The translations under genes and the position numbers were made by a program. A DNA stretch of 64,000 bases from Eutreptiella sp. 'Long Island Sound 2002' (Eukaryota > Protista > Euglenida), in assembly GCA_964036045.1 (NCBI GenBank), contig OZ038379.1, positions 10,664,001 through 10,728,000 on the forward strand. Reading direction: 5' to 3'. The notes beneath the pieces are model-generated. The model was not told the DNA's origin. It searched no databases and worked only from the letters and a program-made list of their open reading frames with translations. Below, piece by piece: positions 1,158-61,975 of this stretch (positions are counted from its first letter, which is position 1; every line of letters begins with the position of its first letter).

Positions 1158-1680
1158 GGGAATGCTTTCCCTGCGGCGCTTGTGGCGCCTGCGGTGCGCC
1201 CTGCGGCGTGCCCTGCGGCGCGCAGTTTGGGTAATAATACCAGAATACAGGCGGAATAGTGCTGCATACATACACACATTTGTTACATACCCCCCCCCCC
1301 ACACCACTTTTTTTCTCCTTTGAGTGTACATTCCCCTTTTTGGGCCTCTATCTTTCACAAATGGTGCATTTGATTCCGTATGATGTTGATCTGTGATGGG
1401 CACTCTTTCATTCGAGGCCGTGGAGAGCATCCGTCTGCCCAATTGTACAATTGTGCTGTGTGCCGCGAGCCGTGCACCAAGTTGGTGATGAACTGGGAGG
1501 AGCGCATCCTACGACTCCATTGGATGGTCCATGCTGTGAATCGCATTTCATCAACAAGTGCAACGTCAAGTACAAGCCGTATGGTCCATGGGGTCATTTT
1601 CTTGGACAATATACACTAAAGCTAATTACCCTTTCCCTGTGGCGCTTGCGGCGCGGCTGCGGCGCTCAGGAAGCATTCCC
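1158..1680 (+). mobile_element. PIF/Harbinger-like non-autonomous element
   Basis: TSD ATT/ATT; TIRs GGGAATGCTTTCC / GGAAGCATTCCC; direct CTGCGGCG-type subterminal repeats at both ends; internal degenerate transposase C-terminus (NWEERILRLHWMV, KYKPYGPWGHF). Confidence 0.8.
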
Positions 1681-3288
1681 ATTGTTGCATCACAAAGGTC
1701 CATATTCCAGTGAAGTGGTCTGGGGCCCAAAAGTTCTATATTGAGCCTTTGAACCACCGAACCATTTTCAGCTTGACCCCCTAGTAAGAAGCCATCTTGA
1801 CTACGCAACAAATGCTTTTGCCTGAAGGACTTTTGCCTTGGGTAGAGAAGTGAAACTTGGCCAAACATTTCAAGCAGAGGGGTGAGGGGTCAGAGGGGGG
1901 CGGAGGGCGTGCACAGTGGCACCTTTGCACTGCACATGCAATGTGCCCTGCTTTTGGAACATACTTGCCCAAACCAGCCCCTAGTGCCCCGCCAAACTCT
2001 TGTTCTGATGCGCCCTTTGTATGCCATTAGTTTCTGAATGAGGTTTGGAACCTCCATTGTGCAATGCAGCATGACAGCCGTTGGTTGCTGAGTGGACACT
2101 TTTTTGGTTGCTTTTGGTGAAGGGGGCCGAAAAGGAATCTCTGTGAAATTTTAGGACAGCCCCCCTTCCAGCCTCCCTTGGACTCAACCAATGAAGAGGT
2201 TGAGCCTGGGGGGGGGGGGGCGACTCCGCGGCTCCTAGGACGCCAACTACCCCCCCCCCCCTTTCACCCCCTTTCACCCCCCTTCACCCTATTTGCAGCC
2301 ACCTTCAGCCCTTCTTGTCTTTTGTCGGTGGAGGTGGATTATGATGATGGGGAATCACGTTACAACTAGTACATTCATGACGCAGCTACCATGGCCATGT
2401 GCGGCCAGCTGGTTCATGCATGACAAGACTGATTGGTGGATTAAATATAGTGCTCTGGTAGGCATTGATATCAACACCGTGTGACGAAATATCTCTCAAC
2501 AGATCATGCAAGGGTGTAGAGCCTCCTTGCACATTTCGACACAACATATTTTTTCTAATTTTTTTTTGTGTTGCTACATTGTCGGAGGGTTTCTTATCTT
2601 GTGAACTTCACCAAATATGCACGGAGTGTGCATGTAGTGTCCATGCGCCTGTCCCAATTTTATCACTGACAAATCATGTGGGGTTGTGGTCTAAGCAAGT
2701 GCCCTCCCCCGCAAAACTGACGTCGACCAACGAGTAGGCCACAGAAAGGCATGGTAGTGGACACCGGTTGTGCTACATGGCACTTAACCATCATTGTGAA
2801 ACAACCCCCAAGTGAAAGTGTCGCAGTGGCATGGTGATTGGATTTTGTCCCTTGCTGCCACTAGCACATTTAAGGTGTCCCCGTGGCTTCATACCGACTG
2901 AATTGTTAAAATCTTAGGGCTAAATAATTCTGGGGAAGTTGTGTGTCTAAAGTTACTTGTGCGCGGAAAATAATTTATTGCGAAAAAAAATCAATTCCAC
3001 ACGAACGATCAAAAAAGAACACATAATGACGTGGAATTCAAAATATTCGCAAAAATTAAATTAATTGTTTGCATCATGTTGCATGTCATCTTGTCTAAAG
3101 GTTCATGGGTACCAGAAATTCTGTTGCATCCAATGTATTTGTGCCTCTTTTCCTCGCGACTTGTTATGACCTCCTGTCCAAGCTACGCACATGATGGATT
3201 GATTGGGCAATCCATGATTTGTCTTTATGTTGTATACAAATGTGGCGGCCGTATGAGTAGCAAAGCAAACCAACCACAGAGCTCCAAG

Positions 3289-3700
3289 AAATAACAGCAT
3301 CCAACCAGAGAGCACTAGGAAATAACAGCATCCAAACAGAGAGAACCAGGAAGTAACAACATGCAACCGGGGAGCACCCGGAAAAACCACAATCCATCCA
3401 CAGCACACTAAGAAATAACGGCATCCAACCAGAGAGCACCAAGAAGTAATAGCATGCAATCAGAGAGCACTAGGGAATGACAGCATCCAAACAGAGAGAA
3501 CCAGGAAGTAACAACATGCAACCGGGGAGCACCCGGAAAAACCACAATTCATCCACAGCACACTAAGAAATAACGGCATCCAACCAGAGAGCACCAAGAA
3601 GTAATAGCATGCAATCAGAGAGCACTAGGGAATGACAGCATCCATCCAGAGACCACCAGGAAATAGCAGCACCTATCTGGACACCACTAGGAAGTACCAG
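3289..3700 (+). repeat. 31-bp minisatellite with a 155-bp (5-unit) higher-order repeat
   Basis: Unit ~AAATAACAGCATCCAACCAGAGAGCACTAGG; TCCAAACAGAGAGAACCAGG recurs at 3331 and 3486. Confidence 0.9.
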
Positions 3701-4847
3701 TTCTCTATTTTGGTTGCAGCAACACAAAGCGCAAAAACAAATCGCTCAAAAAATTCGCAGAAATTGCATAGTTTTTGAACTTTGGATTTTGCGGAAATAC
3801 AAATTCCGCAGATTCTTACAATTCACTCAGCATTTCGCGGATATTTATATCAGCATTCTGGTCAAACTCTGCACAATGCAGAAATTTCATGTGCCCTGTA
3901 CCCAAGGGGGGCTTAGTCTGGGGATGCACCCATCCACCCCATTCCCTTCCGTTTTGACAGTGACTTTTTTGGGGGGCCCAAGAAGAGGGCACCAAAGGCG
4001 CCAGACAAAAAGTGTGGGGGCTCAATTGACTGGGCCCATTGCATCACAATGCACACTTTTCTTCTTTTTAGGGTGTGGCCCTGATACAAATAGCCCAAGC
4101 AACCAGTGCACTGCTTGAGTGGCACCATCCACATTGCAGATTGAAACCCCTCCCTATCCCTACCCCTTCCTGCATGCATGCCTGGGCCTATGTGAATGGA
4201 ACTATGCCGTCAACTGCCTATGTCATGACACGCCACATCTGTATCATAGTTCGATCTCAACGCTTGAACTGATGCAGTGTGGATGATGGTTGTGCCCTTC
4301 CTACTTCCTACCAATCTCCCTCACGCCCCCCACTCACCCCCCACCCCCCTAACCTCACATCCTCACCTTGATTCAGGTCCCCCCCCCCCATCCGATCGTT
4401 TTATCCGACACTAATGTATCAGGGTGTGTTGCAGCAGAACTGGTCCACCCCCTCCCCAGAGCCCTCAGAAATATGGTGGGGGGGGAAGGGGGATTTCGGG
4501 GGCAGTCAACTTCATGTGGGAAATTTCGCACTTCAAATTTGCCGCGAAATTTCCCACACAAATCCAGGGTCTTCCGCGAAATTGGCACCTGTGGCTAAGT
4601 TCCGATGAGCCTGCAAAGCCCTACGCACCACAACACTTCCGGGAGTGTCCACAAAATTTGCCACACAAAATCCAGGGGCTTCCGCCAGATTTCCCGTGGC
4701 GAAATTCACCACCGCGAATTTGACTTGGCACAACCTCCCCCCCCCCCCCCGCGCTGTATTGCACTTTCCCTTGCACTGCTCATGACCCGTGACATCAAAA
4801 CGCTTTTTAGGACCACTTTTTTTTTGCAGTCAGTACATATTTGAGCC

Positions 4848-5456
4848 ATGGACGCCACTGAATCCCGGTTGGAGACACTATATATGGAGCTGTCCGAAAT
4901 CTCCAGCGAGAGCTCTCAGCTGTCATCTCCAGAACGAACCCCGCGGGAGAGCGTACGGCACTGCGAGTATGACCAGCTCTTCAGTGAAGCGCACGTCCCG
5001 ACCGCCGTATGGGAACAGCTGGACAACGGCCAGTGGGCGTGTCATGTGAGCCGGATGGTGTTCGCCACCGCGGTGCAGTGCATCAACCACCAGCGGAAGT
5101 GGCAGTACCAATGCGACCTGGAGGCCTCGCACTTACGAGAGGACACGGCGGTTGTGAAGGCGTTGGAGCGGAAGGCCCAAGAGGAGAGGCACCAAAATGC
5201 AACTGTCAGGCAGGGGCGGAACACGCAATGTGACCTGACGACAGAGACCCAGCGTCTCATGGAGGCCAATCGTCAGCTTACGCAGGACTTGGCGGTGAAA
5301 CAGATGCGGTTGGATACAATGCGGAGACGCCACAGACGTGAGCTCCGGCGCATGCAGTGGAGTAGTCTTCGTCAAGTCGACGACCTTGCGGCGCTGCTGG
5401 AGGCCCCGAGAAAGAATGGCCACGGTGTGCGGGCGCAAGGACAGGCACGCCCCTGA
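4848..5456 (+). CDS. Intronless repeated ORF: degenerate C2H2-like finger plus coiled coil (copy 1)
   Basis: 202 aa; WACHVSRMVFATAVQCINHQRKW; E/R/Q/L-rich helical tail; homologous to 30403-31158. Confidence 0.6.
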   Translation: MDATESRLETLYMELSEISSESSQLSSPERTPRESVRHCEYDQLFSEAHVPTAVWEQLDNGQWACHVSRMVFATAVQCINHQRKWQYQCDLEASHLREDTAVVKALERKAQEERHQNATVRQGRNTQCDLTTETQRLMEANRQLTQDLAVKQMRLDTMRRRHRRELRRMQWSSLRQVDDLAALLEAPRKNGHGVRAQGQARP

Positions 5457-5911
5457 CCCCTTTGCCAACCCCCCCTTCTCTGCAGGGTGTTCTGGGAGTG
5501 CACAGGATGTGCCTGTTCTGCCACAAAATGTCCAGCCCAATCGCCAGCTGGCCCACAACCGCCGTTGGTTGGCTCAGAACGGCCGTTGGTCGGCCCACAA
5601 TCGCCATCCGTTGGCCAACAACCACCGGTGGTTGGCCCATGTAATGGCCTTCACTGGCCTTCACATGTCAATCGCCCCTGCCCCTGTGCCCTGTGCCACA
5701 ACCCTGTGCCTTGTGCCCCAAACCATGCCCATGCCGGCGCAGGCTGTCCACCCAGTATCACCATACACCCAAGCAGATTGCCCCCCTGGTGTTGCAAGAC
5801 CAAGACACCCAAAGCAATGCCTGGCTCAGCCAGGGGATCCTCACGAAGGCGCACGCCTCCGGGTGACCCTCACTACAAACCCGAGTTGATCTTCCCACAT
5901 GCATTGACAGT

Positions 5912-6190
5912 GCACGCCTGGAACGGTACGACAACAAATGGCAGGACGACTTCAGTTCCAAATTTCCCTATCTGCAACTCAATCATCCCCTCGCCACCAC
6001 ACTTGGGGTCCAGGTATTCAAGGTATTCATCGCATCCAGATTTATATGGACACTTTGTCTCGAAGGCCGTTCAATCCCCCCTTTTCAGCATTAGGTGATT
6101 TGCCCCTGGCCACATTTAACGCTCACAGTGTAGGCTCTCCAGACAGGTGCTTACAACAAGCAAGGCCAGTATTTCGTGGTTTCAGGTGCT
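5912..6190 (+). pseudogene. Penelope-like RT C-terminal remnant
   Basis: RYDNKWQDDFSSKFPYLQLNHPLATTLGVQVFKVFIASRF...C ... ALQTGAYNK resembles the PLE pattern YDKRDDF..FP.L.SN.P....GV.ISQLIR...C...L...GY; contains stops. Confidence 0.55.
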
Positions 6191-6371
6191 GCCTCATAGG
6201 AATCCCAGGAGATGAAGCCGGCAGTTTGAGCATGTGTGTCGAAGTGCCTTAGTTTGCCACCCTACCACACCATACCACACCACACCAGACCACACCACGC
6301 CGGAGTATGAAGTGTGGTCAGACCCAAAACATTCAGTGCAAGTGACAGTGGCAGTGCCTAGAGAATTTCAA

Positions 6372-6790
6372 TGATTGTTCACACAAACAGGCGTATGAGA
6401 GCAGCATGGCTTGTGATTCTGGTGGGCTTCCAGCATTCAAGCAACTGAGCTGTAAAATTGCAGATTTTGGGTGGGCTCTGGTGCACCTGAGCCGTAGGTA
6501 TTGCAGTCATATTTTCAAAGTCTCCGCATGATGTCTTTGCTCTTACATGCTTATCCCCAGATTGTATTATCCCAAGAGAGCCACCACAGGCATGCAGCCT
6601 TGGCATGTTTCCCTGCGATATGTGTCATCTTATTAGGCAACGGTCATTCAAAACTCTCAGGCAATTAGTAGCATTCGATCCAGAACGTTCCAAGAATTGG
6701 CAGCAGTAATCTAGAGCCGCAAGGAATTTACCTGTACTGCATCCTGCCGTAAGCTGCCCTAAGCCCCCATCCAGGAACAATTGTGTGCAA
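6372..6790 (+). pseudogene. Intronless protein-kinase remnant
   Basis: LSCKIADFGWALVH (DFG at 6463-6471), upstream IVH, downstream CSLGM and LVAFDPER in shifted frames. Confidence 0.55.
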
Positions 6791-7267
6791 ACAGCATTTT
6801 TATGGTCCAAACATTTTCTAGAATAGGGTTGTTCGACGAATATTTTAAACATTACATTTCAAGACCCGCTGCCTAAAGTTTCAGACCTGTCACCTCAAGT
6901 TTATGACCCGCCCCCTGAAGTCCACACATTGGTCTACAATCGCTGAAAGGGGCGCTCTTTGGGCACTGGCCCAAAGAGCCCACCTGGAAGGGGGGCTTTT
7001 TTGGCAACCTGCCCAAAGAGCCACTGCCACGATGCGATGCGGGGTCGGAACTGGGGCCCCTCTCCGCGACATATATTTTTGCATCCGCCCCTGCCTTCGC
7101 TCCTTCAGTGGATTATCAGACCCCCCCGCATTACTGCCCGTCGGCTGCATTCAGGACCATGGGCGCCCTGCTGCTTCTAGGCTACTGAGCCCCTTGTTGA
7201 GTAAACCATGCGCATGGCGTGCAGCGGTTTCCTCGCTGGCCCAAATTACACAGTAGCACATGCAATC

Positions 7268-7988
7268 TGTGTAATCCACAGTCGCGAAGTCATCACTCGA
7301 CGTCGCGAAATGGAGCCATTTGCCCCTTTGGGACGAAGCTGTTGCAGGCAGCCATAGATGTGATTCCTCCGTCACCCTGCGTATTGGTAACAGTATGCCC
7401 CACTGTTGTTGGTGCCAGGCACCACAGATAGGATTCCCTGTCCTCTTTTGCGTGTGGCTTTCTGATGACGCATGACCTCTCCCGCCCCCGTGTCCAACGA
7501 ATGCCTTGTCCAACGGACTCTCCCATTTGGACCGTACTTTTTTTGGACCCAATTAATTAGGTAGCGAGGTTAGGTATTGAATCAATTAGGTACCGAACGG
7601 CGTGTAAGATGAACACTCCTGTTCGGACCGTATTTTTTGAGGATTTTATTGTTCGTTGGACACGGGTTGCGGGCGGTACGTTGCATGGGATAACATCACC
7701 CAAAAATGGTATGGGTGGCTACAGTGCAATGCACCCTTTGCACTCGGATGGCAGACTTATCAGAAGTAACAACAGAGTTGTGGTGTCAGCAATTCAAACA
7801 TGTGCTGCTGTGTAATCCAAAGTCGCAAAGTAATCACTCGACGTCGGAAATGGAGCCATTTGCCCCTTTGGGACGAAGCTGTTGCAGGCAGCCATAGATG
7901 TGATTCCTCCGTCACCCTGCGTATTGGTAACAGTATGCCCCACTGTTGTTGGTGCCAGGTACCACAGATAGGATTCCCTGTCCTCCTT
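7268..7988 (+). repeat. ~180-bp direct duplication (7268-7449 and 7809-7988)
   Basis: Near-identical GGAGCCATTTGCCCCTTTGGGACGAAGCTG...GATAGGATTCCCTGTCCTC blocks. Confidence 0.85.
7481..7673. mobile_element. Short inverted-repeat element
   Basis: CCCGCCCCCGTGTCCAACGAA vs reverse complement CCCGCAACCCGTGTCCAACGAA; related AATTAGGTACC core at ~17545; no TSD seen. Confidence 0.5.
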
Positions 7989-8159
7989 TAACGTCATACG
8001 CAAGTCTGGATAGTCCCCTCTAGGCTGTTCTCAGGTGAGACCTTTTGTGGCAGTGGGCCAACCACTTGCCCTAGTTTCTTTTGTGAAACATTCTGTTGGG
8101 CGCTTTGGATTGCGAGACTGGGGAGGCAGGTCCCCGTGTCCCATCTGCTACTGCTGTAT

Positions 8160-11100
8160 TTTTTGGGCCGATTTTCATGATTCAGGCAAGCGAGACAGCA
8201 TAAAAAAGTACCAGCTCTTTTGTCGACCTGAAAACTGCCTTCTGAAAAGAAGATGTCTCTACCCACATTGCCAAGCTTAGTCAACAGTCTCAATATCAGA
8301 TCCCTACCCCAGCGCCCAATCCCGGCAGTCCCTCTGTGTATCGATCCTCTTGCAAGTGAGGCGAGCAATCGAACTGCTTGCTTGGTTGCACTTTTCCATT
8401 TACACCCTCTTGTCTGCATGCCTTGTGTATTCCGTGCAACAAGCATTTTACTGTTGGCATGGGTGTCCATGTGGCACGTTGCAGTATCACAGTGCCCAGC
8501 AAGTCCGTACAATTTCTCAAGCCTGCAGATTTGCAGGCTGGTGAGGCTGAGGGGGTATAGGGTAGTTTATGAATTTCTTGTTGGGAAACATTCTCGTTGG
8601 AGTATCTTTTTTTTGAAATATCCTCCACTGTTGTTGGTGCTAGACACCGCAGATCCAATTCCCTGTCCTCTTTTTCGGTCATATGCAAGTCTGGAAAGTC
8701 CCCTCTAGGGTTTTCTCAAGGACGCTTTTTGTGGCAGTGGGCCAACCAACTAGTTTCATTGTGAAACATCCTGTTGGGCGCTTTGGACTTTGAGACCGCT
8801 GCTGTTCCCTATCCTCGCTCTGCTGCTGCTGTAGCAGCTACTGCTACTGCTGGTGCTGCTGTTGGTTGTTGTTGTTATTTGTGTTGCTTTTGTTGTTACA
8901 TACAGATCCAACAAACTCTCTGTGAGCAATCTCCCCACAATCACATCATTCAGCCTCATGTCGGTCCAATCGCCCATCTCTTCCAATCCCACGATCCGAT
9001 CCAATGCAATCCAGTCTCATTTTCATAAGATTGTGCACTGATGCTGCCTGTGTCCTCAAGACCTGAGGCAACCTCATAGAAACAAATGTTGTCTGGTCCA
9101 TTACAGTTTGGTCAACAACTCATTGATATCAAAGAGAGCTATAATCCTGGAGCGAACATAACAAACCTGCGAGTTCCCAAAGGGAACGCCCCCTCGCCCC
9201 TAGCACAGACAGGCTCTGCTTCTTCTTTAATTAAAAGTTTTGTTAGCCCAATGGCTTAGCCCCATTATGGTGAGCAATGGTGCAGAAGAACCAAACCTGA
9301 TGGACCCCTAGCAGTGATGGATATAATGTTGGCGCCACTTGGGGAGTCCGGGTCCGGGGGGGGGGGGGGGTCACAGAAAAACTAAAGGGCCATAGTGGGA
9401 GAGTGCAAACCCCAAAAATATTGTGACTAAATAAGGTGTCTCCGGCAGAATGTCTCCTTTGCCTGCCTGTGCTGCAAATTTACTGTGACTGTGTCTACTT
9501 GCACTTGTGACTGTGTCTACTTGCACTGAAAATTGATTGTGACTGCTGGTATTTGTACACTGTGTGTGTATTCTGTTGTGACATGGAGCAAGCTCCTTGT
9601 CCTCCATTGCATCTATTAGTACAGGAGGGACAAGGATGCAGGTGCACACATGACAGGCACAGAGCCCTGTGGATGCAACGTTGCCAATGCCATTCAATTT
9701 CATTCAATGTCATTCACTGTCATCACTCACAGTGACAATATTGTCTTGCTCGCTGCAGGTACCACTACTTGACCTGTCATTATCACTGTCACTATTGCCG
9801 CCACTCCCACTGCCTGAAGATACCAGGCATTAGGGGTCCAGTGGTGGATATAACTGGGGGCTGGGGGGGGGGCGCGTCCAGCCCGCACCCCACCTCGCCC
9901 CTTGGTCACAAAAAGGTCACGATATTTGGTCTCAAAAACAGTGGCCTAAAACGGGCCGTTTTGGACAGCCCTCAGCCCGTACATGTACATGGGAGGGGGG
10001 GGGGGGTGATGCAACAACAGGGCAAGCGCAACAGGCAGAACAGGGGTGTTCCGAATTTCAGCAAGCAAATGAATATCAGCAACTGCTTGCTTATTATCCA
10101 GAGGGGTAATGGGTTTTTTGTTCTTGTCATTTGTTGGGCAATTTGGACTGTGAGACTTGGGAGGAAGGACCCCGTTCCCCATCCTCACTCGACACCGCTG
10201 CTGATGTTTTTTTGTTTGTTGACTGTCTTATGTATAGCCCTGAATTTCATGATTTGGGCAAGCAAACCAGCACGACAAAGTACTGGCTCTTTTGTGCACC
10301 CGGAACAGGCCTCCCGAGAAGGAGATGTATCTACCCACCTTGTCAAGGTTACCCCCCCCCCCCTGTGAAACCGGTTGGCCACGGTTGGGAAAGCGGTTGG
10401 GGAGCAGGAGGCGGCGGTTACAAGACCGTTGCACCTGCAGTTGGCGTTGGAAGGATACGTTTGGAGCGGAACCGACGGTTACTGTTGGGGGGTGTGGACG
10501 ACCAGGACGCCACGAGGAGGGATGGAGCAATTGGCCCCCCCCCCTTTGCCAATGGCCCCCTATGCCAATGGCCCCCCCACCTGGAATGATGAATCATGCC
10601 CCCCCCCCGTCAATGGCCCCACTTTCGGGAAAGAAGAATCTTGGCCCCCCGAAGGGTTTTTTGTTGAAAAATCCCTGTTGCCTGTACAGGAGGTGCCTCG
10701 GGATGTTGATAATTAGAGAGTGCTTTGTATGCATGACAGGTGAGTAGCCAAAAAATGGAACGAAGTGAGACCTACAACCATTCAAAAGATGTGCACCCTA
10801 GAAGGGATGCATCCAAACAATGCCTCAACAAGATGCACGGGCCAAAAAATGCTCACACGACGGTTTTTTTTAAACTTTTTGATAATACTCGGAGCCAATT
10901 GCCCTCCCTCCTACATGCCAATGCCCCCCCACCCAGAGAGAAGAATCATGGCCCCCCTTGCCAATGGCCCCCCTTTCGGGAAAGAAGAATCTTGGCCCGG
11001 GCCAGTGGCAAGTGGGGAGGATGGTAGTCAACCGTCCCAATGTTCGCCTTATATCAGCCCCAATCCTGGAAGTTCCGCTGCGTAATAATCCTCTTGCAAC

Positions 11101-11270
11101 TGCTTGCTTGGTTGCACTTTTCCATTTACACCCTCTTGTCTGCATGCCTTGTGTATTCCGTGCAACAAGCATTTGCCTGTTGGCATGGGTGTCCATGTGA
11201 CTCGTTGCAGTATTACAGTGCCCAGCAAGTCCGCACAATTTCTCAAGCTTGCAGGTTTGCAGGCTGGGGC
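8160..11270 (+). repeat. Repeated modules: 8160-8280 ~ 10235-10350; 8365-8540 ~ 11100-11270; GCCAATGGCCCCC blocks at 10525-10630 and 10890-11000
   Basis: Direct visual alignment of the blocks; element boundaries not resolved. Confidence 0.7.
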
Positions 11271-11770
11271 AGTTTATAGGGTATGTCACGATTTTTTGGA
11301 AAATTTCCTGTTGGAAAAATTCTGTGTTGGAAAAATTATGACCCAGTGCAGGAGTGTAAGATGGCCCGTGTAAATCATGTGTATGACTGTAGGACGATGT
11401 GTGACCTATGTTGCACTGGAACGTAGGTTAGGGTGAGGGACTATTGCTCCTTAAAATGATTTCCTTCCTACGTTGCACTGGAAAACATCTTTTGTTGCAG
11501 TTTCCTGGTAGGTTGCATTTGTTTCTTTGTGTAAGGCCCAGGGGGTTACATTAGTTCTGCTGTGCTGCAGCGGTGTTTCCGCACTGAGTCAGCCGACCAA
11601 ACGTTCATGAATCCGCCACATAAGTTTGGCAAGTTGCTCCGAAACATCACCCGAGTGGTATGAGTGGCCACAGTGCAATGTACCCTTTGCACTAGGATCC
11701 TGTTGTGAAAATTATCAGAAGTAACCAATAGAGATCCAAACAATAAGGAAAAAAGCGCTTTGTGGATACT

Positions 11771-12662
11771 GGGAATGCCATGCACGCAGTGCGCACGCAG
11801 TGCCCACGCAGTGCGCACGCAGTGCAAAGTTTTGTATGTCGGTAACTACCTGAACCCTAGTTTTGGCCCTTTTGCGGAGGTTTGTTGTTCAATAGTAGGA
11901 TTTTTTAAGCTTTTTATGCATTCATGATGACACGCTGACCTTGACCCCAAAGATGTGGCTTGGTGGATTGATCGGTGCTCCGTTGGGCGCTCCAAGGAGC
12001 CTTGGGAAGTATATTCACAACTCCATAAACATGTCAACCTCATTGGTGTTGATTGTGTTATAGCGGAGGAATTCTGCATGAAGTATGGCGCGGAAGGTTT
12101 GTTGTCCCAGCAGGACCTTCCAATACCTCTATTTTCTTCGGCAAATTCCAAGTTGGGACAACTGTGCCTATGTGTCTCGCTCAAATTGTTCGGATGATGT
12201 GTATATGTGATGTACTCTTAAATCCCAAGTACACAGGCCATGTTTATAAGGTAACGGTGGCCGTGGACAACCTTGGGAATATAGTGTGGATATGTGATCT
12301 TATGACGGGAAAGTCGGCGGATGTTATGATTTGGGATCAACGTGGTCCTTCGCGAATACACGGACGGTTCTTTGATTATGAAGTAGGTAATCACGATGGC
12401 GCTTACAAGGGTTACAGTGGTTGCAACTGCATAGTGGTACTCTACAACACTAAATGAGATGTTCATAGGTACATCAAAGTACCGGGTTGGTAGTGGTTCA
12501 ATGTGTGTCCTGTTGGCTTTGTTGCTTTGCAGTGTTATACAAAGGTGGCATGGGGTGGGTTTCACTGCAATGTGCACGCAGTGCCCACGCAGTGCGCACG
12601 CAGTGCCCACGCAGTGCACACGCAGTGCGCACGCAGTGCGCACGCAGTGCAAACACTTTGCC
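11771..12662 (+). mobile_element. PIF/Harbinger-like element with DDE_Tnp_4 transposase fragments
   Basis: TSD ACT/ACT; GCACGCAGTGC arrays at both ends; KVTVAVDNLGNIVWICDLMTGKSADVMIWD...HDGAYKG. Confidence 0.85.
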
Positions 12663-12863
12663 ACTGGCCCAGTGAGCCCCCTTGAAGGAACGGGGGCTGT
12701 TTCGGAAAGGGGGTTTTTGGGCAGCCTGTGCAAAGAGGGTGTGGTTTGGACATTTACTTTTTCGACCACCCATGCGATCAGATGTCTTGGTTTGTGTCCC
12801 CTTCGTCATCATGTCTGGTGTTCACAGTTTTGGGGCTAGTTTCTGGTTACCATTTGATGTTGC

Positions 12864-13064
12864 CTCAGTGGCGTGGCAGTCTCTGGTACTGCATGAGTGA
12901 GTGACAGACTACAGATGAGTTTCAAATATACGTCCCGCCACTAATGGTGGTATGCGACCCAGGAATCGCACGGGACAACATATGTTGTACTTACACTGTC
13001 ATTACTGATCCGGCCCGTCTGGCCGAGCACTTATGATGAACTTGTGAGTCTGAGTCAAAAAAAA
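12864..13064 (+). mobile_element. Short poly(A) retroposon with 26-bp TSD
   Basis: AGTTTCTGGTTACCATTTGATGTTGC at 12838-12863 and 13065-13090; insert ends ...GTCTGAGTC-poly(A). Confidence 0.85.
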
Positions 13065-17746: not shown

Positions 17747-18144
17747 GAGAGTACGTTAGCGCGCCGGGCTCGCGCCAGGTGCGCCGGGCAAAGTTTTCCC
17801 ACGCTTTGGTGTGGCCCCTCGAGTTGGGGTTAAGGATTCCCACTCTTCACCGTGGCCACTTGAGTGGTCCGTCACGCACAAGAGGGGGATTCTTTGATTT
17901 TGAGGTGGGTTGCCATGATGGGGCCTACAAGGGTAGGGTGCATGTGATTGTTCCATTTGTTGGGCGAAAAAATAACAATTAAATTGACCGCCAAGGGCTA
18001 GACAATGTACTTGTGCGGAGGGTTCCCAGGCTAGAGGAGGGAGTGATGTTTGAGGGTAAGGCATTGTGATAGATGGCCTGAACATTCTTCTGGATGCTGG
18101 GAGCGCCGGCCCGCACTGGGCGCGCGCCGGGCAAATGTACCCTC
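17747..18144 (+). mobile_element. PIF/Harbinger-like deletion derivative
   Basis: TIR GAGAGTACGTT / AATGTACCCTC, flanks AGA/AAA; GCGCGCCGGGC repeats; FFDFEVGCHDGAYKGRVHVIVPFVGRK; homologous along its length to 61612-61975. Confidence 0.75.
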
Positions 18145-48099: not shown

Positions 48100-48103
<4 letters not shown>

Positions 48104-48150: not shown

Positions 48151-48154
<4 letters not shown>

Positions 48155-50331: not shown

Positions 50332-50485
50332 CCTCACAAAACCGAAGTTTTCCATAAAAACTGAGGTTTTGGGAGGGGGGGGGTACAGTGGCAGAGGCAG
50401 AGACTGAGGCTGACCACCCCCCCCCCCCCCTGTACTTTTCAGTTGATGCTTTTCTTCTGACTGTGCTTTCGGGGGGACTACAAGC

Positions 50486-51625
50486 ATGCCGGGGGGTACA
50501 TCGAATGGGTCATCGGACGCGGCTAGTGGGGAGAGCCGCGGGGCAAAGCGGGCCAGGCTGGCCTTCAACCAGGACGACATGGACCTGGACCCCGTCAAGA
50601 CCCCCGAGTACGCACGCTGGGAGCGGTGGCGAGATCACGCAGCGGCTACCGCGTACGGGTTCCTGGACAGCGCGGACGCCGGCATCATGGCTGCCCGGTA
50701 CCAGGAGCGGCTGATGGAGGATGGCCTGTCCGTGGCGGGCGTTGATCGGGCAGTGGAGTGGGCCGGCGGCGGGCTTGACGCCCCGACGGCCCTGATATAC
50801 ATGGCCCTCTTTGAGCGATCAACGGACCTGCGGCTCGACGTCGAGGTGGCTGCGTGGAAGGCGGTGCCGCAGCCCAGCCCGCCTGCCCGGGAGCAGGCAG
50901 AGGAGACGCCGCAAGACCAGCCGCGGGAGCCGCAGGAGTCCCCGGAGCAGGCGGAGATACGACGGCTGGAGGCTCGCATCCGGGAGCTCCAGCTACCTAA
51001 GGTACCACCCCTATCCGAGGGAGAGCTAGCCAAGATAGCCGCGGGGCAACTTCCCTGGCTCTGGCAGCAGGAGCTCGTCCAGGCCTTGAGCACCTGGCTC
51101 AAAACGGAAGACCCCGTTGGGAGGGGCAATGCGGTTGTGGAAACGCTGTGGAAGGTGGTCTACAGGGACTGCCAGCCTACGCCCACCCACCCTGCTGGGG
51201 CGGCGGCGCGGCCAGCGCCACAGGGATGGTACGCCCAAGCCCAGCAGCCTACGCCGAGTCAGACCCAGGCTCCGGCGCCGGCTCAGGCGCAGGCCCCGGC
51301 CCCTGCCCCCCCTGGGGCATGCTTCCGCTGTGGCTTGCACGGACACTGGGCCAGGGACTGTGCCAGTGGTACCCAGGGGCGGGTCCCCTCCGTCGCCGGT
51401 TCCGTCGCAGGCTCGTACCGGGGGGGGTTCAGTACCGTGGGTAGCCAGAGCCTGTACACAGCGCACAGCACGGGCCGCACCTATGACGCGACTGGACCCC
51501 CCCCGTACCCATGTTTTCGGTGTGGCCGCAACCACTGGGCCGTGGGCGGCCCGTGCCCGGCGCCGCCTGCCCAGGCCCCCCAGCCCTTTCCGGCCGGGCC
51601 GGCCCCAGCGCCGGCCAGCTGCTGA
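50486..51625 (+). CDS. gag: gag-like protein (379 aa) with zinc knuckles
   Basis: CFRCGLHGHWARDC (CX2CX4HX4C) and CFRCGRNHW...C; first ORF after repeat A1. Confidence 0.85.
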   Translation: MPGGTSNGSSDAASGESRGAKRARLAFNQDDMDLDPVKTPEYARWERWRDHAAATAYGFLDSADAGIMAARYQERLMEDGLSVAGVDRAVEWAGGGLDAPTALIYMALFERSTDLRLDVEVAAWKAVPQPSPPAREQAEETPQDQPREPQESPEQAEIRRLEARIRELQLPKVPPLSEGELAKIAAGQLPWLWQQELVQALSTWLKTEDPVGRGNAVVETLWKVVYRDCQPTPTHPAGAAARPAPQGWYAQAQQPTPSQTQAPAPAQAQAPAPAPPGACFRCGLHGHWARDCASGTQGRVPSVAGSVAGSYRGGFSTVGSQSLYTAHSTGRTYDATGPPPYPCFRCGRNHWAVGGPCPAPPAQAPQPFPAGPAPAPASC

Positions 51626-51749
51626 AGAACCTGGCGCCAGCGCCAGGGATGGGCCCGCCGGCGACGGGGGCGCCGATGACGAGGGGGGCGGGGCACTCAA
51701 CCTCCGATACGCGGGGTCGGCAGTGGACAGCTTATGGTGGGGCAACTAC

Positions 51750-52700
51750 ATGGAGGAGCCCCTCGCGCTGGCCATCCGGCGGTGGTCCCCTGGAACCGTG
51801 GAGCGGTGGACGGCAATCCTCAGGGATGTGGGCCGGTTCGCGGCGCACTGGCCCGAGCTGGACGCGGCGGGGGCACTGTCCCAGTACCTCGTCCGACGCG
51901 CCGCCATGGGCCAGCAGCCTGGGACGCTACGAGGCGTCATATCCGCCCTTCGCCTGGCGGAGAAGCTGGGATGCATACGACCCACGGTACGGCCCGTGCA
52001 CTGGCTCATGGCACGGGGTGCCGCCACCACCACTGCCGCGCCACGACCCACTCAAGTATGGGCCGAGCTGGTCACCCTCCGACTCATGGCGCGGAGCATC
52101 AGGACCACCCTCGACTGGTTCTGCCTGGGCCTTGCCGTCATCTCCTTCGCCACTCTCCTCAGGGTGGGTGAAGCAGCCAGCGTACGGCCCGTGGACTTGC
52201 GGAAGCGGTGCGTGCTGGGGTTCTCCGATGACAAGAAGGACGACGACTGGGTCACGGTACGGCTGGGAGCGTGGCCCGATGCATGGCGCGCGGCGATGGC
52301 AGCCCACCCGTGGGTGTCCAGCAGGCCCGCGTCAGTGTCGCTTATGGCTGCCGCGTTCGACCTCCAAGCGGCGATCCATGGCTTGCTGGCTGCCACGGGG
52401 TGGGAATCCATGGGGTGGCACGCGTGGAGACGCGGAGGAGCTGCGGCCATGCGGGCGTTCGGGGCCGCCATCGCCAGCATCGCGGTGGCTGGCCGATGGG
52501 ACAACGAGGCGGAGGCGCACAGGTATGCCAGCGCGCCCCCTGGATGGGAGTTCTTCCTGCCCGACAATGTGCCTTGGCCCACGCCGGGATTTGGGGTCGA
52601 GATCCGGCCGGTCCACGCGTACCAGCTCTGGGCGCTCGGCACGCTTGGGCCCCGTGGCCCCGACGGGACGGGCGCCGCCCCTGCCCCACCCGATGTCCGC
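51750..52700 (+). CDS. Tyrosine recombinase (3' end approximate)
   Basis: From MEEPLALAIRRW; catalytic-type motifs LLRVGEA, HAWRRGG, GRW, AHRY (R-H-R-W-Y). Confidence 0.9.
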
Positions 52701-53089
52701 GCTGGGAACCATGGCGGCCAAGGGACCGCCTGCGTGGCGATTCCGACATGCAGGAGACCATCGTACTGGGCTCCTCCAGTGACGAGTCGCCTGGCACGGT
52801 GGCACGCAGGGCCGCCAGGCACCCCCGCGAAGGCCAGCGCAAAGCCTACGTGCACCGAGCCGTGGCCCGCGGCCGGTCGGCACCCGCAGCGTGGGCAACG
52901 CGGGCTGAGCCCGCCCCGAAGCCCCGAGCCAAGCAGACCGCAGATGGAGCGGCCGACCGCCGAGCCGCAGCCCCCCGTTCCGCGGCTGTGCCCCGGGTCA
53001 CGCCGGCAAGGGCAAGCACCAGAGGCACCCAGGCACCCGGGGGGGCGCCGGCGAGACGGCGCAGCGGAGCGGCTGGGGATGCAGCTGGC

Positions 53090-54963
53090 GGCTGCCCGGT
53101 GCGCCAGGTGCGGCCTCGACTGGAACGACCACCTGGAGGCGGCGGCGCGCCACATGGGGCGCAGCCTGAGGGCCCCTGCTGACGATGTCCTGTCCCTCTT
53201 GCAGGCGTGGTGGGCGGAGTTCATCAAGTGGGCTGTGGATCGCCCCGCGTGGAAGGAGAGGGCAGCGGCCGCGGACCTGGCGCTGGCGGAGGAGGCACTG
53301 CACCTCCTGGCGGGGGGCGAAATCCCGCTCGATGGGGGCTCCTCGACCCGCCTGAACGACCAGTCGCGCGTCACTGTGGAGCTCGCGGCGCGTGGGCTGG
53401 GGGACGCGGGCCGCGTACACGTCCCGCCGCACGTCTGGAAGGACTGGGCTGACCCCGAGTTTGGCAGGGCGGGGGGGCGTGTCCATCCCCTCCCCCCTTC
53501 CTGCTGCCCACGGGTGGCAGCCCTCCTCTCCACCCTCGCGTCCCAGGGCCTGGTCAGCGTGGTGGGGGGGGATGCGAATGCGGAGGTGTTCGTCAAGTGG
53601 AAATCAGAGCGCAAATGCGCCCTGATTGTGAACATGAAGATGTTCAACCGGGGGTGCAAGTACAAGGCCCGCCCCTTCAAGCTGCCGTCGCTGGAGGGCC
53701 TGGCCATCCTTCTCAGGGACCTGGGGGGAAGGGTGGGTGGGGCAGGGGGGGGGGGGCTGTGGGGCACCAAGCTGGACATAGCGAACTGCTATTGGAGTGT
53801 GGAGCCCCCCCCCCCCCCTGGCGAACACCATCCGGGTAGCGGCCCAGGGGCACACATATGCTTTTCTGCGAGTGCCCTTTGGCTGGCACCAGGCGCCTGG
53901 GCTGGTCCAGGCCCTTATTTCCGACCTGCTGCGGGACCTGGGGAAGGGGGGGGTGGTGGTGGTACAGTACCTGGATGACGTACTCTTTGTCGGTCATGAT
54001 CCGGGGGAGGTGGCCACTGTCACCGACAGTGCGGCACGCCTCCTACGACAGGCGGGCTTCCTCATCAGTGAGAAGTCCGTCTTCACGCCGCAGCGCTCCT
54101 TGCGGTGGATGGGCAAGGATGTGGACCTGGCAGGGTGCAGGGTGGCGCCGGCGGCCTCGGCGGTGGCGGCGGTGGTGGCGGCGTGGGTGAAGCTGGCCCT
54201 CAGGCCATACACCTATGTCGCCCTGAGGCGGCTACTGGGGAAGATCGGGTGGTTGGGGCGCCCAGGGAACCTGGGGGGGTGCTTTCTGGCGGGTGCCCGG
54301 TCCTGGCTGCGCTGGGGCCCGCGCTGGGCCTGGCGCACACCGGCAGCAGTGGTGCGCGGTCTCTGCGAAGCCATAGCCCAGTGCTACCGGGGCTGGGAGC
54401 CGGACACTACCGGGGGGGGGCCGGCAGTGCGCGTGTTTGTGGACGCGGCCAGGTGTGCCCTTACCACGGGGACTGACCCCTCCTACTGCGTCGGCTCTTG
54501 GGGACCGGGGGGGGCGGATCTGTCGCTGTGCCCGGCGTGGGTGACCACCCAGCAGGCGGCTGAGCTGTGGGGGACGCTGGTGGCGCTGGACGATGCGCAG
54601 GCGCGACGAGCGCGGCGCCTGGTGCTCGTGGGGGACAACATGGGGGCGCTGGCCCAGCTCCTTTGGGGGAGGGCGGGGGCAGGCAAGGTCCAGCAGCAGC
54701 GCATCCTGCGGAGGATAGCCCACCGCCTCCGCTGGACGGGGCTGCAACTGACCCTCTGCTGGGTACAGTCCGCACTAAATCCAGCGGACTCCATCAGCCG
54801 AGCATGGGACGGGAGGGGGGGCAGGGCAGCAGTGATCGAGGCAGCGGCGAAAGAGCGCCTGTGGGTGAGCTCGCCGCAATGGGCAGCGTGGGGGGCTATT
54901 GCAGACCGCGACAAGGCGGTACGACCGTGCACGGTTCCCCTTCCTGTCTGGATGGGAGGATGA
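53090..54963 (+). CDS. Reverse transcriptase/RNase H (frameshift in the poly-C run near 53805-53818; 5' end approximate)
   Basis: VFVKWK..KCALIVNM, KLDIANCYW, then in the next frame YAFLRVPFGW, YLDD, RNase H VFVDA, QQAAE, VGDN, NPADSISR. Confidence 0.9.
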
Positions 54964-55520
54964 CAGTCAAAATTTTTATCCCAGGGGGCCTGCAAATACA
55001 GTAGCTGGTTGGAGAGTCGATGTCCAGTGCGCAGTGCAGAGGGGTGCAGGGCGGTGCAGGGCAGGGCGTGCACATGCCAAAACCGAAGTTTTCCATAAAA
55101 ACTGAGGTTTTGGGAGGGGGGGGGGTACAGTGGCAGAGGCAGAGACTGAGGCTGACCACCCCCCCCCCCCTGTACTTTTCAGTTGATGCTTTTCTTCTGA
55201 CTGTGCTTTCGGGGGGACTACTCGCCCGGGAGGTGAGGTACAATGCACTATGTGGCGCTATACGCGCGGCCAAAGGCCATCATCGTGCCCCCAGGGGGCC
55301 TGCAAATACAGTAGCTGGTTGGAGAGTCGATGTCCAGTGCGCAGTGCAGAGGGGTGCAGGGCAGTGCAGGGCGGTGCAGGGCAGGGCGTGCACATGCCAA
55401 AACAACCGGGCCAATTTTGGTTAACCTCTTGCGGCAGCTTTGTCCTATAATGTGCATGTGGTAGGCAATGATGCGTGTTTTTGCAACTGTGCTTGGTCTC
55501 ACATTTGTGAGGACTCCCTT

Positions 55521-56945
55521 GGGGGAGCCTTAAGCGCAATGCGCGCGCAGTGCAACTTTTTGGGCGTCTGGCCGTACTAGAGACCCATACTTTGAGATAC
55601 TAGGGGCCCCTAGGGGCATCATGGTGACCCGTAGCGGAGGTTTTGAGTTCTGATTTTGTCCCCCTTTGTTTGGGAATCCCCGAGAATGCAGGGGTGACGT
55701 AGCATTTCCGCCCTCTTTTGGGCCCCAACCTTCCGGTGCTATTGAGGAAAGCAACCCGATGAACCCCGAACATTCACCAAGGAGGAGGTGGCAAAAATGA
55801 ACAAACAAACGGAAGACAAGATCCTGGAGATGTTGCTCCATGTACATCAGAAAAGCACCGGAGCTCACCCTCTTGACCCCCAAAAAGATGGTGTTCAGTG
55901 GTGGATTAAGCGTTGTGGCGGAACTCGGCCCTTAAGGACGCAAATCGGTTATATGGGTGTTGATGCCTACTCTGCCGAGGAGTTTTGGCTAAAGTATGGG
56001 CATGATGATTTATTTCCACGCGAGCATTTGTTCCACTTCTTTTTCTTCCTCAAGCACACTCCACCTCATAGGTGTGATCATCTCCTCTCTGGAGCAACAG
56101 GGTGCTATGCGGAGGCTTGTGATGTGAAGGGAAGGTAGTTTGCAACTTTGGGAATGCCATGCACGCAGTGCGCACGCAGTGCGAAGTTTTGGATGTCGGC
56201 AAATGCTCGAACCCTAGTTTTGGCCCCTTTTCACAAGTTTTTGGTTCCGTACCAGGGTTTTTTTGGCTTTTCAAGCATTTAGGATGTGGCATATTTGAAT
56301 TGTCAACCATTTCCCCCTAGAAGAGGCCCATCGACAAAGTGTACACAGTCGACACGACCCGGATCTCGACGTCGTCATTGCCGACACTGCAGCGAGCCTC
56401 GTATCCGTAGAGGCGGTTCGATTCGCCCTGCAGAGTACTCTTCCCGACAGATAGTGCGTGCACCAAAACCTTGGTCGACTTCAAGGCGATTCTCGAACCG
56501 AGATGCTCAAGATCATCGATCGGTATGGCCACGTCCACAACTGCAAAGAAGTCAACGTGGTCATCGTCGCTCGAAGGCTCTCGATCGCCGATACTCGATG
56601 GTGGCGAGTCGACACCAAGACCGGACAGTTCTTCTTCGACGATGCTGTTGGTTATAACTACAACCAGAAGTATCGATGGACACTTGGCCAACCCTATGGT
56701 ATTGACACCTTTCAGTCTTCCCTCTAGTAAACAGGTGACAGGTATTCTTAGGTGAGTATCCTAGCCTCTGCGTGCGCAATATGCACGCAGTGCGCACGCA
56801 GTGCGAGATCTTGGCCTTTCTTGAGCTGGGGCAGTTTGGGTCACCTAATTCTAAGGGCGTTTCCAAGGGGTGTGCTTGGGGGCTCTTCGGGGGGAACATA
56901 GTCTAAAAGTAGCGCGCGGTGCGCGCGCGGTACAAAGATTCCCCC
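55521..56945 (+). mobile_element. PIF/Harbinger-like element with putative transposase N-terminal part and a nested insertion
   Basis: TSD CTT/CTT; left ~230 bp and right arm shared with 43047-43794; ORF 55788-56138 (WWIKRC...EEFWLKYG) resembles WWIDRC...EEFCMKYG at 11955. Confidence 0.82.
56150..56816 (+). mobile_element. Nested Harbinger-like cargo element, copy 1
   Basis: TSD TTT/TTT splitting the host element's GCAACTTT|CTTGAG; left end GGGAATGCCATGC as at 11771; GCACGCAGTGC arrays; cargo frame 56299-56727. Confidence 0.82.
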
Positions 56946-57014
56946 CTTGTCCCAGAAAAGGCACAATTCTGTAAATTTTGGAGGTGTCTTGTCCTGCCCT
57001 GCATGTCTTCTATT

Positions 57015-57703
57015 GGGAATGCCATGCACGCAGTGCGCACGCAGTGCGAAGTTTTGGATGTCGGCAAATGCTCGAACCCTAGTTTTGGCCCCTTTTCACA
57101 AGTTTTTGGTTCCGTACCAGGGTTTTTTTGGCTTTTCAAGCATTTAGGATGTGGCATATTTGAATTGTCAACCATTTCCCCCTAGAAGAGGCCCATCGAC
57201 AAAGTGTACACAGTCAACACGGCCCGGATCTCGACGTCGTCATTGCCGACACTGCAGCGAGCCTCGTATCCGTAGAGGCGGTCCAATTCGCCCTGCAAAG
57301 TACTCTTCCCGACAGATAGTACGTGCACCAAAACCTTGGTCGACTTCAAGGTGATTCTCGAACCGAGATGCTCAAGATCATCGACCGGTATGGCCACGTC
57401 CACAACTGCAGAGAAGTCAAAGTGGTCATCGTCGCTCGAAGGCTCTCGACCGCCGATACTCGATGGTGGCGAGTCGACACCAAGACCGGACAGTTCTTCT
57501 TCGACGATGCTGTTGGTTATAACTACAACCAGAAGTATCGATGGACACTTGGCCAACCCTATGGTATTGACACCTTTCAGTCTTCCCTCTAGTAAACAGG
57601 TGACAGGTATTCTTAGGTGAGTATCCTAGCCTCTGCGTGCGCAATATGCACGCAGTGCGCACGCAGTGCACACGCAGTGCGCACGCAGTGCAAACACTTA
57701 GCC
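57015..57703 (+). mobile_element. Harbinger-like cargo element, copy 2
   Basis: TSD ATT/ATT; near-identical to 56150-56816 but a different TSD, so a separate insertion; right end matches 12662. Confidence 0.85.
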
Positions 57704-60323: not shown

Positions 60324-60829
60324 GTGTGCTGTGGTACGGTTATGTCATCCCTCGGAGACCCATGAGAGGGGCCTTAGACGGTGTATTTCAGCTGGTTGAG
60401 TGGGTGGTTGGTGGTGCCGGCGCCTTGGTAGAGTGGCTTGTCCATGTGTTGCGGCGTGGTAGACAGTCCCTGCACCACACGGCTCTGGCTTTTTGCAACG
60501 GGCCGAACGATCACCCTCCCTGCCACCGGCAGACCACGCAATGCAGAACAAACGCAGGCGGCAATCAGTCCCTGAGAGCCTGAGTGACAGCTCTGATTGT
60601 ACACACATGAACAAATAACGTCTCCTGAGAGACCCTCGGGGCACATTACTATTGGCCCTTGCCCCAGGTGCAGCTAGTGTCTGGACCGTATTCCCTTAGA
60701 ACCGAATGTTGTCGGTACCAAGTGTTTTGCAGCGCTTGTGCCAAGGTCGGTGTGCGGTGGGGTCGTGTTGCGCTGTGGTTGCCCCTCGGGCTGTGTCGGG
60801 GCCCTGCGCCCAACCCCATCCCCTTCCAG

Positions 60830-61525
60830 GGCTCCGCCGCGACCAACTGCGGTGAGGCCGGCGGCAGCATTCGGCTGCACTGTGTCCGTTACCCCCACGT
60901 CCCCACGGGGGTTTGGTGCGGCACCTACGACACCGCCGGCCGATCGGAGCTCCCCGGCATCGACACCCTCCAGCGGTGGCTGGCCAGCGACACGGCCCCG
61001 CAGCCCGCGCTCTACGTCGTGTGCCTGCAAAACTGTCGCCCGGGGGGCGCCAAGTTGTGGGGCCTGCAGCTGCTCAGTTCCCTCAACTCCCGATCCTTCC
61101 GGCTGCTGTCGTCCACGGTCTCGGGGACTCTCGCGCTCCTCATCTTCATAGCCCAGAGCTGCGACGTCCACTGCTCCCAAGTCCAGGCCTTCCCCGCACA
61201 AGCGAAGGCTCAGACCTCCATCTTCGTGGGCCTGAAGCTGCACGACACGTACATCGGGTTTCTGGGGTCTAACGTCCAACAGACCGCCGCAGACACGCCG
61301 GACCAGCTGGCGGGGCTGCTGGAGGTCGTTCTGCAGGCGCCGCGCTACGGGTCCCATCGCCTGCCCATCATCCACCAGGTCGACTTCCTGTTCTGGCTCG
61401 GCAGCTTCGCGTCGCGCATCCCTGCGAGTGGCACCGAGGCCGCCCATGCGCTGCTGCAGAGGGGCGACTACGAGAGACTGGTGACGCTGTTGGATCCGCT
61501 GCGAAATCTGAAAACCCAGAAGCGG
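60830..61525 (+). CDS. Host gene exon 2: 5-phosphatase (IPPc/EEP-fold) domain, N-terminal part
   Basis: Acceptor CCCCATCCCCTTCCAG| (phase 0), donor CGG|GTATGA. Peptides VWCGTYD, LYVVCLQN, LALLIFI, VGLKLHDTYIGFLGSNV, DFLFWLGSFASRI follow the IPPc motif order; strong GC3 bias. Confidence 0.85.
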
Positions 61526-61611
61526 GTATGAGGCTTGGCAAGAGTTTGATGGAGAGCGTGGCGTGTTGATGTGGGATGTAGAGGATTGGCGAAGGATGTC
61601 ACGGGCTCATA

Positions 61612-61975
61612 GAGAGTACGTTAGCGCGCTGGGCACGCGCCGGGCAAGTTTTCCCACGCTTTGGTGTGGCCCCTCAAGTTGGGGTTAAGGACTCCCACTC
61701 TTCGGTGTGGCCACTTGAGTGGTCCGGCACGCACAAGAGGGGGATGCTTTGAGTTTGAGGTGGCTTGGCCATGATCGGGCCTACAAGGGTAGGGTGCATA
61801 TGATCGTCCCTTTTGTTGGGCGAAACAATGGGAGTTTAATTGATCGCCAACAGTCATACAATGTGCTTGTGCTTAGGGTTCCTGGGCTAGAGGAGGGAGG
61901 GATGTTTGTGGGGAAAGCATTGTGATAGATGGCCGGAACATTCATTTGGATGCCGGGCGCGCCGGGCAAACGTAC
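61612..61975 (+). mobile_element. Intronic PIF/Harbinger-like derivative
   Basis: Flanks ATA/ATA; GAGAGTACGTT left, AACGTAC right (4 nt short); transposase remnant DRAYKGRVHMIVPFVGRNN. Confidence 0.75.

Follow-up and report, generated by a model that had tools for sequence, protein, structure and literature searches.

Transposons of the PIF/Harbinger type (PHIS) fall into groups by their target-site duplications (TSDs), which read TWA in PIF/Harbinger, ANT in Pangu, CWG in NuwaI and C|TNA|G in NuwaII (Han et al., PMC4482050). NuwaII elements have terminal inverted repeats (TIRs) starting with GG and a DDE transposase of the same superfamily; their autonomous forms average ~4.7 kb and carry a pair of open reading frames (ORFs), of which one is Myb/SANT (PMC4482050). 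Elements of the Ping/mPing type and Tourist-like miniature inverted-repeat transposable elements combine a DDE_Tnp_4 transposase, TIRs and a 3-bp TSD, and Ping/mPing-type short derivatives keep both ends together with slices of the parent and amplify in trans to high copy number, while Pack-MULEs and other Pack-type TIR transposons spread fragments of unrelated genes. For Ac/Ds and P elements, abortive gap repair makes internal-deletion derivatives that retain their cis ends and show short junction microhomologies and, occasionally, filler DNA and template switches. Here, we analyzed a window of 64,000 nucleotides from the euglenid Eutreptiella sp. 'Long Island Sound 2002' (contig OZ038379.1; G000:C2:10664001-10728000 of a 2.28-Gb assembly), a repeat-rich stretch of 48-66% G+C in which a prediction made from the sequence alone (the original prediction) had described ten transposons as a cargo-shuffling system with shared arms, swappable ends and different captured contents in each copy. 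We conclude, with a probability of roughly 85%, that the ten copies in the window are non-autonomous members of several sister lineages (A, B, C and E) within one very abundant clan of PHIS cut-and-paste transposons and are mostly internal-deletion derivatives, so that their differing interiors would be different surviving slices of one transposase gene.

Reading the sequence at each site placed all ten elements at, or a few bases from, their predicted positions, with inverted termini and 3-bp flanks (Table 1), except that the copy at 45092 (A45) has ATG and ATT as its flanks where ATT had been given. The shared arms of the copies at 43047, 55521 and 39064 (A43, A55 and A39) proved real in a self-comparison of the window: the left arms of A43 (43047-43277) and A55 (55521-55751) are 95% identical over 231 nt, and the right arms at 43665-43794, 56816-56945 and 39831-39959 are 94-95% identical over 130 nt. 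The switch point common to A43 and A55, GAGGAAAG, is also as predicted. In the same comparison, B56 was 98.3% identical over 657 nt to 57013-57669 (B57), and both carry a piece of an unrelated ORF, but they do not form one subfamily with B11. The GGGAATGCCA termini occur exactly three times, and B11 shares an identical 33-nt tip with B56/B57, whereas the adjoining subterminal arm of ~125 nt is only 80% alike, which makes B11 and B56/B57 sister families. Arms are patchwork-like between the sister lineages, and "shared arms, swappable ends" describes them accurately.

Full-length, putatively autonomous parents of the A family were found in the same genome (e.g. at loci L059 and L060). By whole-genome search, the peptide of the A55 interior was embedded in open frames of 500-686 amino acids (aa) at many loci; full-length parent DNA was read for the A type only. 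The four full A-type copies measure 2258-2973 bp; perfect TSDs flank three of them (TGA, TAT and ATG), and the two flanks of L059 do not match each other (TGG/TGA). Their ends read GGGGG...CCCCC. The ~40-bp TIRs are imperfect and consist of 11-bp units rich in GCGC, tandem repeats occupy the 5' subterminal region, and one long ORF encodes a DDE_Tnp_4 transposase with an N-terminal extension. The parent ORFs scored 31.4-31.9 bits against Pfam PF13359 (DDE_Tnp_4; cut-off, 24.8), and an alignment of 19 transposases of this genome, including 17 others of the Harbinger type, shows conservation of the residues D428 (VDSMP), D503 (DGAY) and E541 (RxxxE). The C terminus is a Cys-rich finger (CALCC...CDKC...CTDCIDTHTC). 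When eight ORFs of 86-540 aa from L060, a full copy of 2973 bp, were scanned, DDE_Tnp_4 was the only domain recognized, and neither Myb nor SANT nor MADF appeared. Among DDE_Tnp_4 loci of the genome, the twenty best (L001-L020) share no DNA with the window elements, and their transposases are of other lineages.

BLAST alignment of the window elements with the fetched parent loci showed that L059 and L060 each run from the left arm through the A55 cargo (aa 263-385) and then the A43 cargo (aa 488-583) to the right arm (see Table 1 for the map of L059). The original prediction had held that such an element, with the cargoes in colinear order, would make the copies ordinary deletion derivatives, and its proposal that the A43 and A55 interiors were captured falls on that point. 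A43 is a double-deletion derivative made up of the left arm (1-230), its transposase slice and the right arm, while A55 comprises the left arm, its own slice, the last ~30 nt preceding the right arm and the right arm itself, with B56 interrupting it. The A family thus shows what is seen in deletion derivatives, i.e., colinearity with a same-ended parent and amplification after deletion.

Searching the window elements by tblastn with the A-type parent ORF extended this picture beyond A43 and A55. Seven of the ten window copies hold ordered transposase pieces on the same (+) strand (Table 1), and the fragments match DDE_Tnp_4. D428, D503 and E541 occur together in none of the ten copies, so all of them are non-autonomous. 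B11 is a B-type deletion derivative with 11-bp CACGCAGTGCG repeats at either end, and B-type parents, with open frames of up to ~500 aa, are 78-86% identical to it. Within the E lineage, E1 has the TIR GGGAATGCTT... and CCCTGCGGCGC-type subterminal repeats, and E3, with tips GAGAGTACG.../...GTACCCTC, is 87% identical to 61637-61965 (E10). No coding remnant was detected in A45 by tblastn with the parent ORF; this copy consists of arm sequence, subterminal repeats (GGGGACCCC...GTAGCCA) and a 3' part, its left arm being ~82% like the A arm and its right part matching the 3' end of a C-lineage element in L028. Abutting the left end of A45 is a 60-nt fragment (45030-45091) resembling the left end of A39 (…CGTTAGTGCGCCGGGCATCTTTT…), with no matching right end found downstream. 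Either a broken outer element or a composite would account for it.

We next turn to the breakpoints. All four A43/A55 breakpoints, compared with L060, show microhomology of 1-6 nt. The shared left breakpoint lies inside GAGGAAA, at the end of an arm unit, and pairs with AAGGAA and GAAAAGGAG downstream, the downstream partners reading AAGGAA|GCAACCC for A55 and GAAAAGGAGCAAGGG for A43. Derivatives of other types among the fetched loci have their arm breakpoint at 102, 178 or 184, and such varied breakpoints indicate many independent deletions. The 293 bp missing from A43 were considered as an intron, and this was rejected, the junction being unlike a GT...AG removal. The A55-type deletion is present at three loci with three TSDs, CTT (window), CAA and TAG; the element has therefore moved since the deletion arose. 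Two A55 paralogues that lack B56 (L052 and L053) preserve its empty site (...GCAAC TTT CTTGAG...), which demonstrates that B56 duplicated 3 bp on inserting and establishes where B-type elements end.

The interiors of B56 and B57 are of another kind. Positions 57173-57556 of B57 are a 128-codon pseudogene fragment on the + strand, ~50% identical by tblastn to residues 92-219 of P0010, a protein from the same genome (100% match) whose family is unnamed in the source database; one TAG stands where relatives carry Gln. Using tblastn with P0010 and its relatives, the B56 interior was recognized as a fragment of the same repeated orphan ORF. A 90-aa piece of the B57 + frame has 26 relatives among 1.84 billion representatives searched, of which P0008 (64%) and P0020 are closer to B57. 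The B57 interior shows codon periodicity; its codon-position composition does not separate sense from antisense. The ESM Atlas recognition score favors the + frame (2276 versus 1207), with no usable match. Neither the B57 frames nor P0009-P0014, P0032, P0039 and P0080 had a Pfam match, and a PDB sequence search with the orphan ORF family gave no match. The P0010 family has at least 119 full matches in the genome at 83-100% identity, with open frames commonly of 813-820 aa and at most 1025 aa.

In a by-eye comparison, none of these 119 P0010-family places lay within 10 kb of the ~60 listed B-type transposase places, which marks the B57 fragment as foreign to the transposase gene; most likely, it would have been copied in once and then amplified. 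The same result is evidence against an alternative in which the fragment is the remnant of a second gene of an autonomous B57-type element, so that B56 and B57 would be ordinary deletion derivatives like the others. That alternative draws on the presence of a second ORF in most PHIS groups (PMC4482050), on the strand of the B57 fragment, which is also that of the transposase in B11, its sister element, and on the closeness of P0008 and P0020, by which the donor belongs to a lineage other than the abundant P0010 one. It also draws on C9:12143545-12145936, where a B57-like match (12145814) follows a B-type DDE match (12143545) by 2 kb on the same strand. However, the open frames of B-type parents do not exceed 502 aa, the orphan-family ORFs (at least 813-820 aa) have no DNA-binding or other Pfam domain and the full A-type copy has no second recognizable gene, and we regard a second-gene origin as improbable, at perhaps the level of a minority view. 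Acquisition of a foreign fragment by the B56/B57 family is the reading that we carry forward.

A39 combines pieces of more than one source. From its C-type left TIR, it runs through its transposase pieces, the second of which holds the Cys-rich finger, into a Dam-like NPPF fragment of ~60 codons, followed by a short tandem duplication, ~97 nt from the right subterminal arm of the A type and, at the right end, a TIR of the C type; in its frame, the finger (…CIDTHTCGTN) is succeeded by YWRSMRLCYPNPPFSQLAKVLTKIALKGARVVL. The match of the NPPF piece to Pfam Dam is sub-threshold (E 0.004-0.007; 16-17 bits, where the cut-off is 28). In L028, a C-lineage element that is 1785 bp after exclusion of a nested A43 copy and has the TSD ACT passes from the finger directly into the 3' sequence seen in A45, and because the NPPF piece is missing from this longer element, it is an addition in A39. 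Dam-carrying DIRS and long terminal repeat retroelements have been reported in Euglena gracilis (preprint 10.64898/2026.05.21.726589), which makes a donor of this sort plausible. The C-type TIR motifs (CCGGGC units at both ends) are joined to the A-type arm at ~95% identity, while the coding part is ~80% like A; we read this patchwork as the result either of template switches from one sister element to another or of a cis-acting region being conserved. We also observed a weak resemblance (E 0.023; 9/24 identical) between residues 103-126 of the A-parent ORF (L054, FWRKERPKYPEQPVTGVPKVIEQI) and 39587-39658 in the NPPF piece; the N-terminal extension of the A parent may be an old, degenerate Dam-like fragment, and Pfam gave no support for a link between these residues and the NPPF piece.

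The two chimeric families bring us to a Pack-type explanation, in which it would be routine for the elements to take up unrelated gene fragments and exchange them between conserved arms, each copy thereby carrying different cargo. Interiors with captured, unrelated gene pieces are found in B56/B57 and, weakly, in part of A39 only, and it is these non-transposase coding fragments, together with patchwork arms such as the C-type TIRs and A-type right arm of A39, that speak for it. Yet seven of ten interiors are colinear transposase remnants, and one parent carries the A43 and A55 cargoes in order, which largely refutes the explanation for the A family. Each chimeric family, moreover, has one structure in many near-identical copies, a pattern that points to one acquisition followed by amplification rather than to shuffling, and what donated the B57 fragment is a family of repeats rather than a demonstrated host gene. 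Among 40 scored copies each of B57 and A43, all full-length or nearly so and 96-100% identical, no instance of the same ends with different captured genes was found, and the A39-type frame recurs as the same 122-aa frame. We therefore rate routine capture and exchange as very unlikely. As for the cargo-shuffling system of the original prediction, the foreign pieces of B56/B57 and, weakly, of part of A39 are what survives of it; the seven colinear remnants and the non-coding parent sequence of A45 speak against it, and each foreign piece has the appearance of a single acquisition with later amplification rather than of swappable cargo. Altogether, the results support internal deletion as the main source of the differing interiors.

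To define the target site, left and right termini were paired across all fetched genomic copies, giving 46 end pairs, of which 37 have identical 3-bp flanks (p ~1e-58). These 37 TSDs comprise 19 different triplets, the commonest being TAA (5), TTT (4), TAG (4) and ATA (4). TWA (TAA plus TTA) accounts for just 7 of them, so the earlier suggestion that the TSDs are not restricted to TAA/TTA is confirmed and the TSDs do not follow the strict PIF/Harbinger target; TNA accounts for 10. The duplicated triplet, which is ~85% A/T at each position, is preceded by C in 24 cases (p 9e-7) and followed by G in 29 (p 6e-11), and the target is roughly C|WWW|G, a loose palindrome. The frequency of perfect TSDs also bears on whether the pattern is due to chance or to an assembly artefact such as collapsed repeats or mis-joins. 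The genome is highly repetitive, although nothing specific points to an artefact; the 37 perfect pairs, the empty site of B56 and the dozens of copies that lie at separate loci and have individual flanks reduce this explanation to near insignificance and leave the ten copies as genuine insertions.

Assignment of the elements to the PHIS non-autonomous elements, as originally proposed, is supported by the DDE_Tnp_4 domain with its D-D-E triad in the parents, the TIRs and the 3-bp TSD; of the strict PIF/Harbinger features, the TWA target and a second ORF with Myb/SANT (or MADF) are absent. The window elements resemble those of the Ping/mPing type in all the respects named above but differ in their C|WWW|G rather than TWA target, in their termini (GGGGG...CCCCC or GGGAATGC), in their parents, whose one recognizable ORF ends in a Cys-rich finger and which show no Myb/SANT helper, and in their euglenid host. 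None of the six PHIS groups defined by TSD has a target that matches C|WWW|G exactly, NuwaII coming nearest, loosely. As in NuwaII, C and G flank the TSD, here in most copies, the TIRs begin with GG and the DDE transposase is of the same superfamily; unlike in NuwaII, TNA makes up the minority of TSDs given above, the middle three bases are simply A/T-rich and neither the ~4.7-kb size nor the two-ORF organization is seen. With Pack-MULEs, the families of 56150/57015 and 39064 share the spreading of unrelated gene fragments, whereas most interiors here derive from the elements' own transposase gene, there is no sign of copy-by-copy cargo diversity and the donors of the foreign pieces look like repeats (an orphan ORF family and a possible retroelement Dam domain). 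Compared with Ac/Ds and P elements, the mechanism here is inferred from four junctions only.

A course of events consistent with these data can be outlined. The transposase would make 3-nt staggered cuts at C|WWW|G, giving rise to the 3-bp duplications. Short copies would arise from full-length parents by internal deletion with both ends retained, and the 1-6 nt microhomologies suggest interrupted or template-switching repair of excision gaps as the likeliest route; such copies would then be mobilized in trans and amplified. In two families, repair may also have copied in foreign DNA, the 56150/57015 family gaining the 128-codon piece of the orphan ORF and the 39064 family gaining the Dam-like NPPF piece along with a patch of A-type right arm, after which both chimeras would have been amplified as units.

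Several points weigh against this account. B11, A39, E1, E3 and E10 are colinear with the A-type protein only, at 39-70% identity, and not with parents of their own. The left breakpoint is exactly identical in two independent deletions, A43 and A55, for which microhomology is a plausible explanation, and the repair mechanism is deduced from junctions, not observed. A helper gene could be spliced, unrecognizable or supplied in trans, autonomy with a single ORF being predicted from sequence. Lastly, the paired matches on C9 are a reminder that some B-type parent could carry the orphan ORF itself.

Table 1. Window elements, map of the A-type parent L059 and places of the P0010 family. Residues are those of the A-type parent transposase; candidate numbers are from first-look searches and are not curated copy numbers.
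Feature	Position	Strand	Flanks	Size and remarks	Parent residues retained	Genomic copies	First-look candidates
E1	1158-1680	+	ATT/ATT	523 bp, non-autonomous	~575-593 (KYKPYGPWGH), transposase tail; weak, E 0.007 in small database	at least 40 at 87-100%	1201
B11	11771-12662	+	ACT/ACT	892 bp	304-356 and 439-508	>80 of B11 type, same 134-aa frame	6736
E3	17747-18144	+	AGA/AAA, imperfect	398 bp	485-521 (E 3.5e-12)		
A39	39064-39959	+	AAA/AAA	896 bp	453-549 and 610-654	NPPF-piece peptide (71 aa): nearly all same 122-aa frame	16421
A43	43047-43794	+	TAA/TAA	748 bp	488-583	at least 40 at 97-100%	4430
A45	45092-45768	+	ATG/ATT, imperfect	677 bp			
A55	55521-56945	+	CTT/CTT	755 bp minus nested B56	263-385		
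B56	56150-56816	+	TSD TTT (56147-56149, 56817-56819)	667 bp, nested in A55			
B57	57015-57703	+	ATT/ATT	689 bp		at least 40 at 96-100%	2765
E10	61612-61975	+	ATA/ATA	364 bp, right tip 4 nt short	503-530 (E 6e-7)		
Left arm	L059 346-574						
Extra tandem copies of arm unit 93-230	L059 609-995						
A55 interior	L059 1498-1871						
A43 interior	L059 2185-2462						
293 bp missing from A43	L059 2463-2754						
Right arm	L059 2755-2992						
P0010-family places (proteins P0010, P0032, P0080)	e.g. C7:3638446-3639459, C4:10792459, C15:9921617						

Some further features of the fetched loci were recorded. At L057 and L058, A-type transposase copies lack the usual left arm, and a 196-aa ORF (MDLNLGDRVFYTRSNGVRVPATVVG...; L057:2781-3368, minus strand) lies just upstream of the frame, with a weak SH3-like match (Pfam SH3_12, E 0.006). 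Long tandem arrays of a 48-bp unit, reading STLCCVAPRVGVRDSQ in one frame, occur at L079:2-1309 and 2788-3297 and inside the C-lineage element of L028. Such arrays both flank and sit within transposon copies, which suggests that satellite-like arrays develop by expansion of the elements' 5' subterminal repeat.

Other repeats neighbor the ten elements in the window. A retroelement at 50337-55221, just upstream of A55, is bracketed by 145-bp direct repeats (50337-50481 and 55078-55221; 98% identical) and contains a Gag-type zinc knuckle ORF (50486-51622), a reverse transcriptase ORF (53797-54960) and a 953-aa ORF (51117-53975) that has no Pfam match, in a region of up to ~66% G+C. A 1040-bp repeat is present at 15776-16814 and 49292-50331 with 98.4% identity, with a third, diverged partial copy at 40097-40209, and a tandem array with a 31-bp period (~16 units, 63-94% identity) occupies 3239-3734.

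Much of what the window contains is ordinary, internal deletion of a transposon yielding different interiors between shared ends; the descriptive value lies in an abundant clan, its C|WWW|G target, its single recognizable gene and two families that spread unrelated ORF fragments. By first-look counts (1,201-16,421 per query), this 2.28-Gb euglenid genome is heavily populated by the Harbinger-like clan, and a full-text search for Euglena and Harbinger returned no paper whose title or abstract points to such elements in Euglena. We tentatively propose, at somewhat less than even odds, that the clan is a distinct, so far unnamed euglenid PHIS group in which a single ORF would encode the transposase with its C-terminal Cys-rich finger, a Myb/SANT helper would be missing, the target would be C|WWW|G and non-autonomous members would occasionally transduplicate pieces of other genes. 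If this is true, the B57 and A39 families would represent genuine Pack-type behavior outside plants. The clan is relevant to the question of whether Harbinger-type transposases can do without a Myb-like partner, and for annotation of this genome, it accounts for thousands of short transposase-like and orphan-ORF-like pseudogenes that would otherwise be called as genes.

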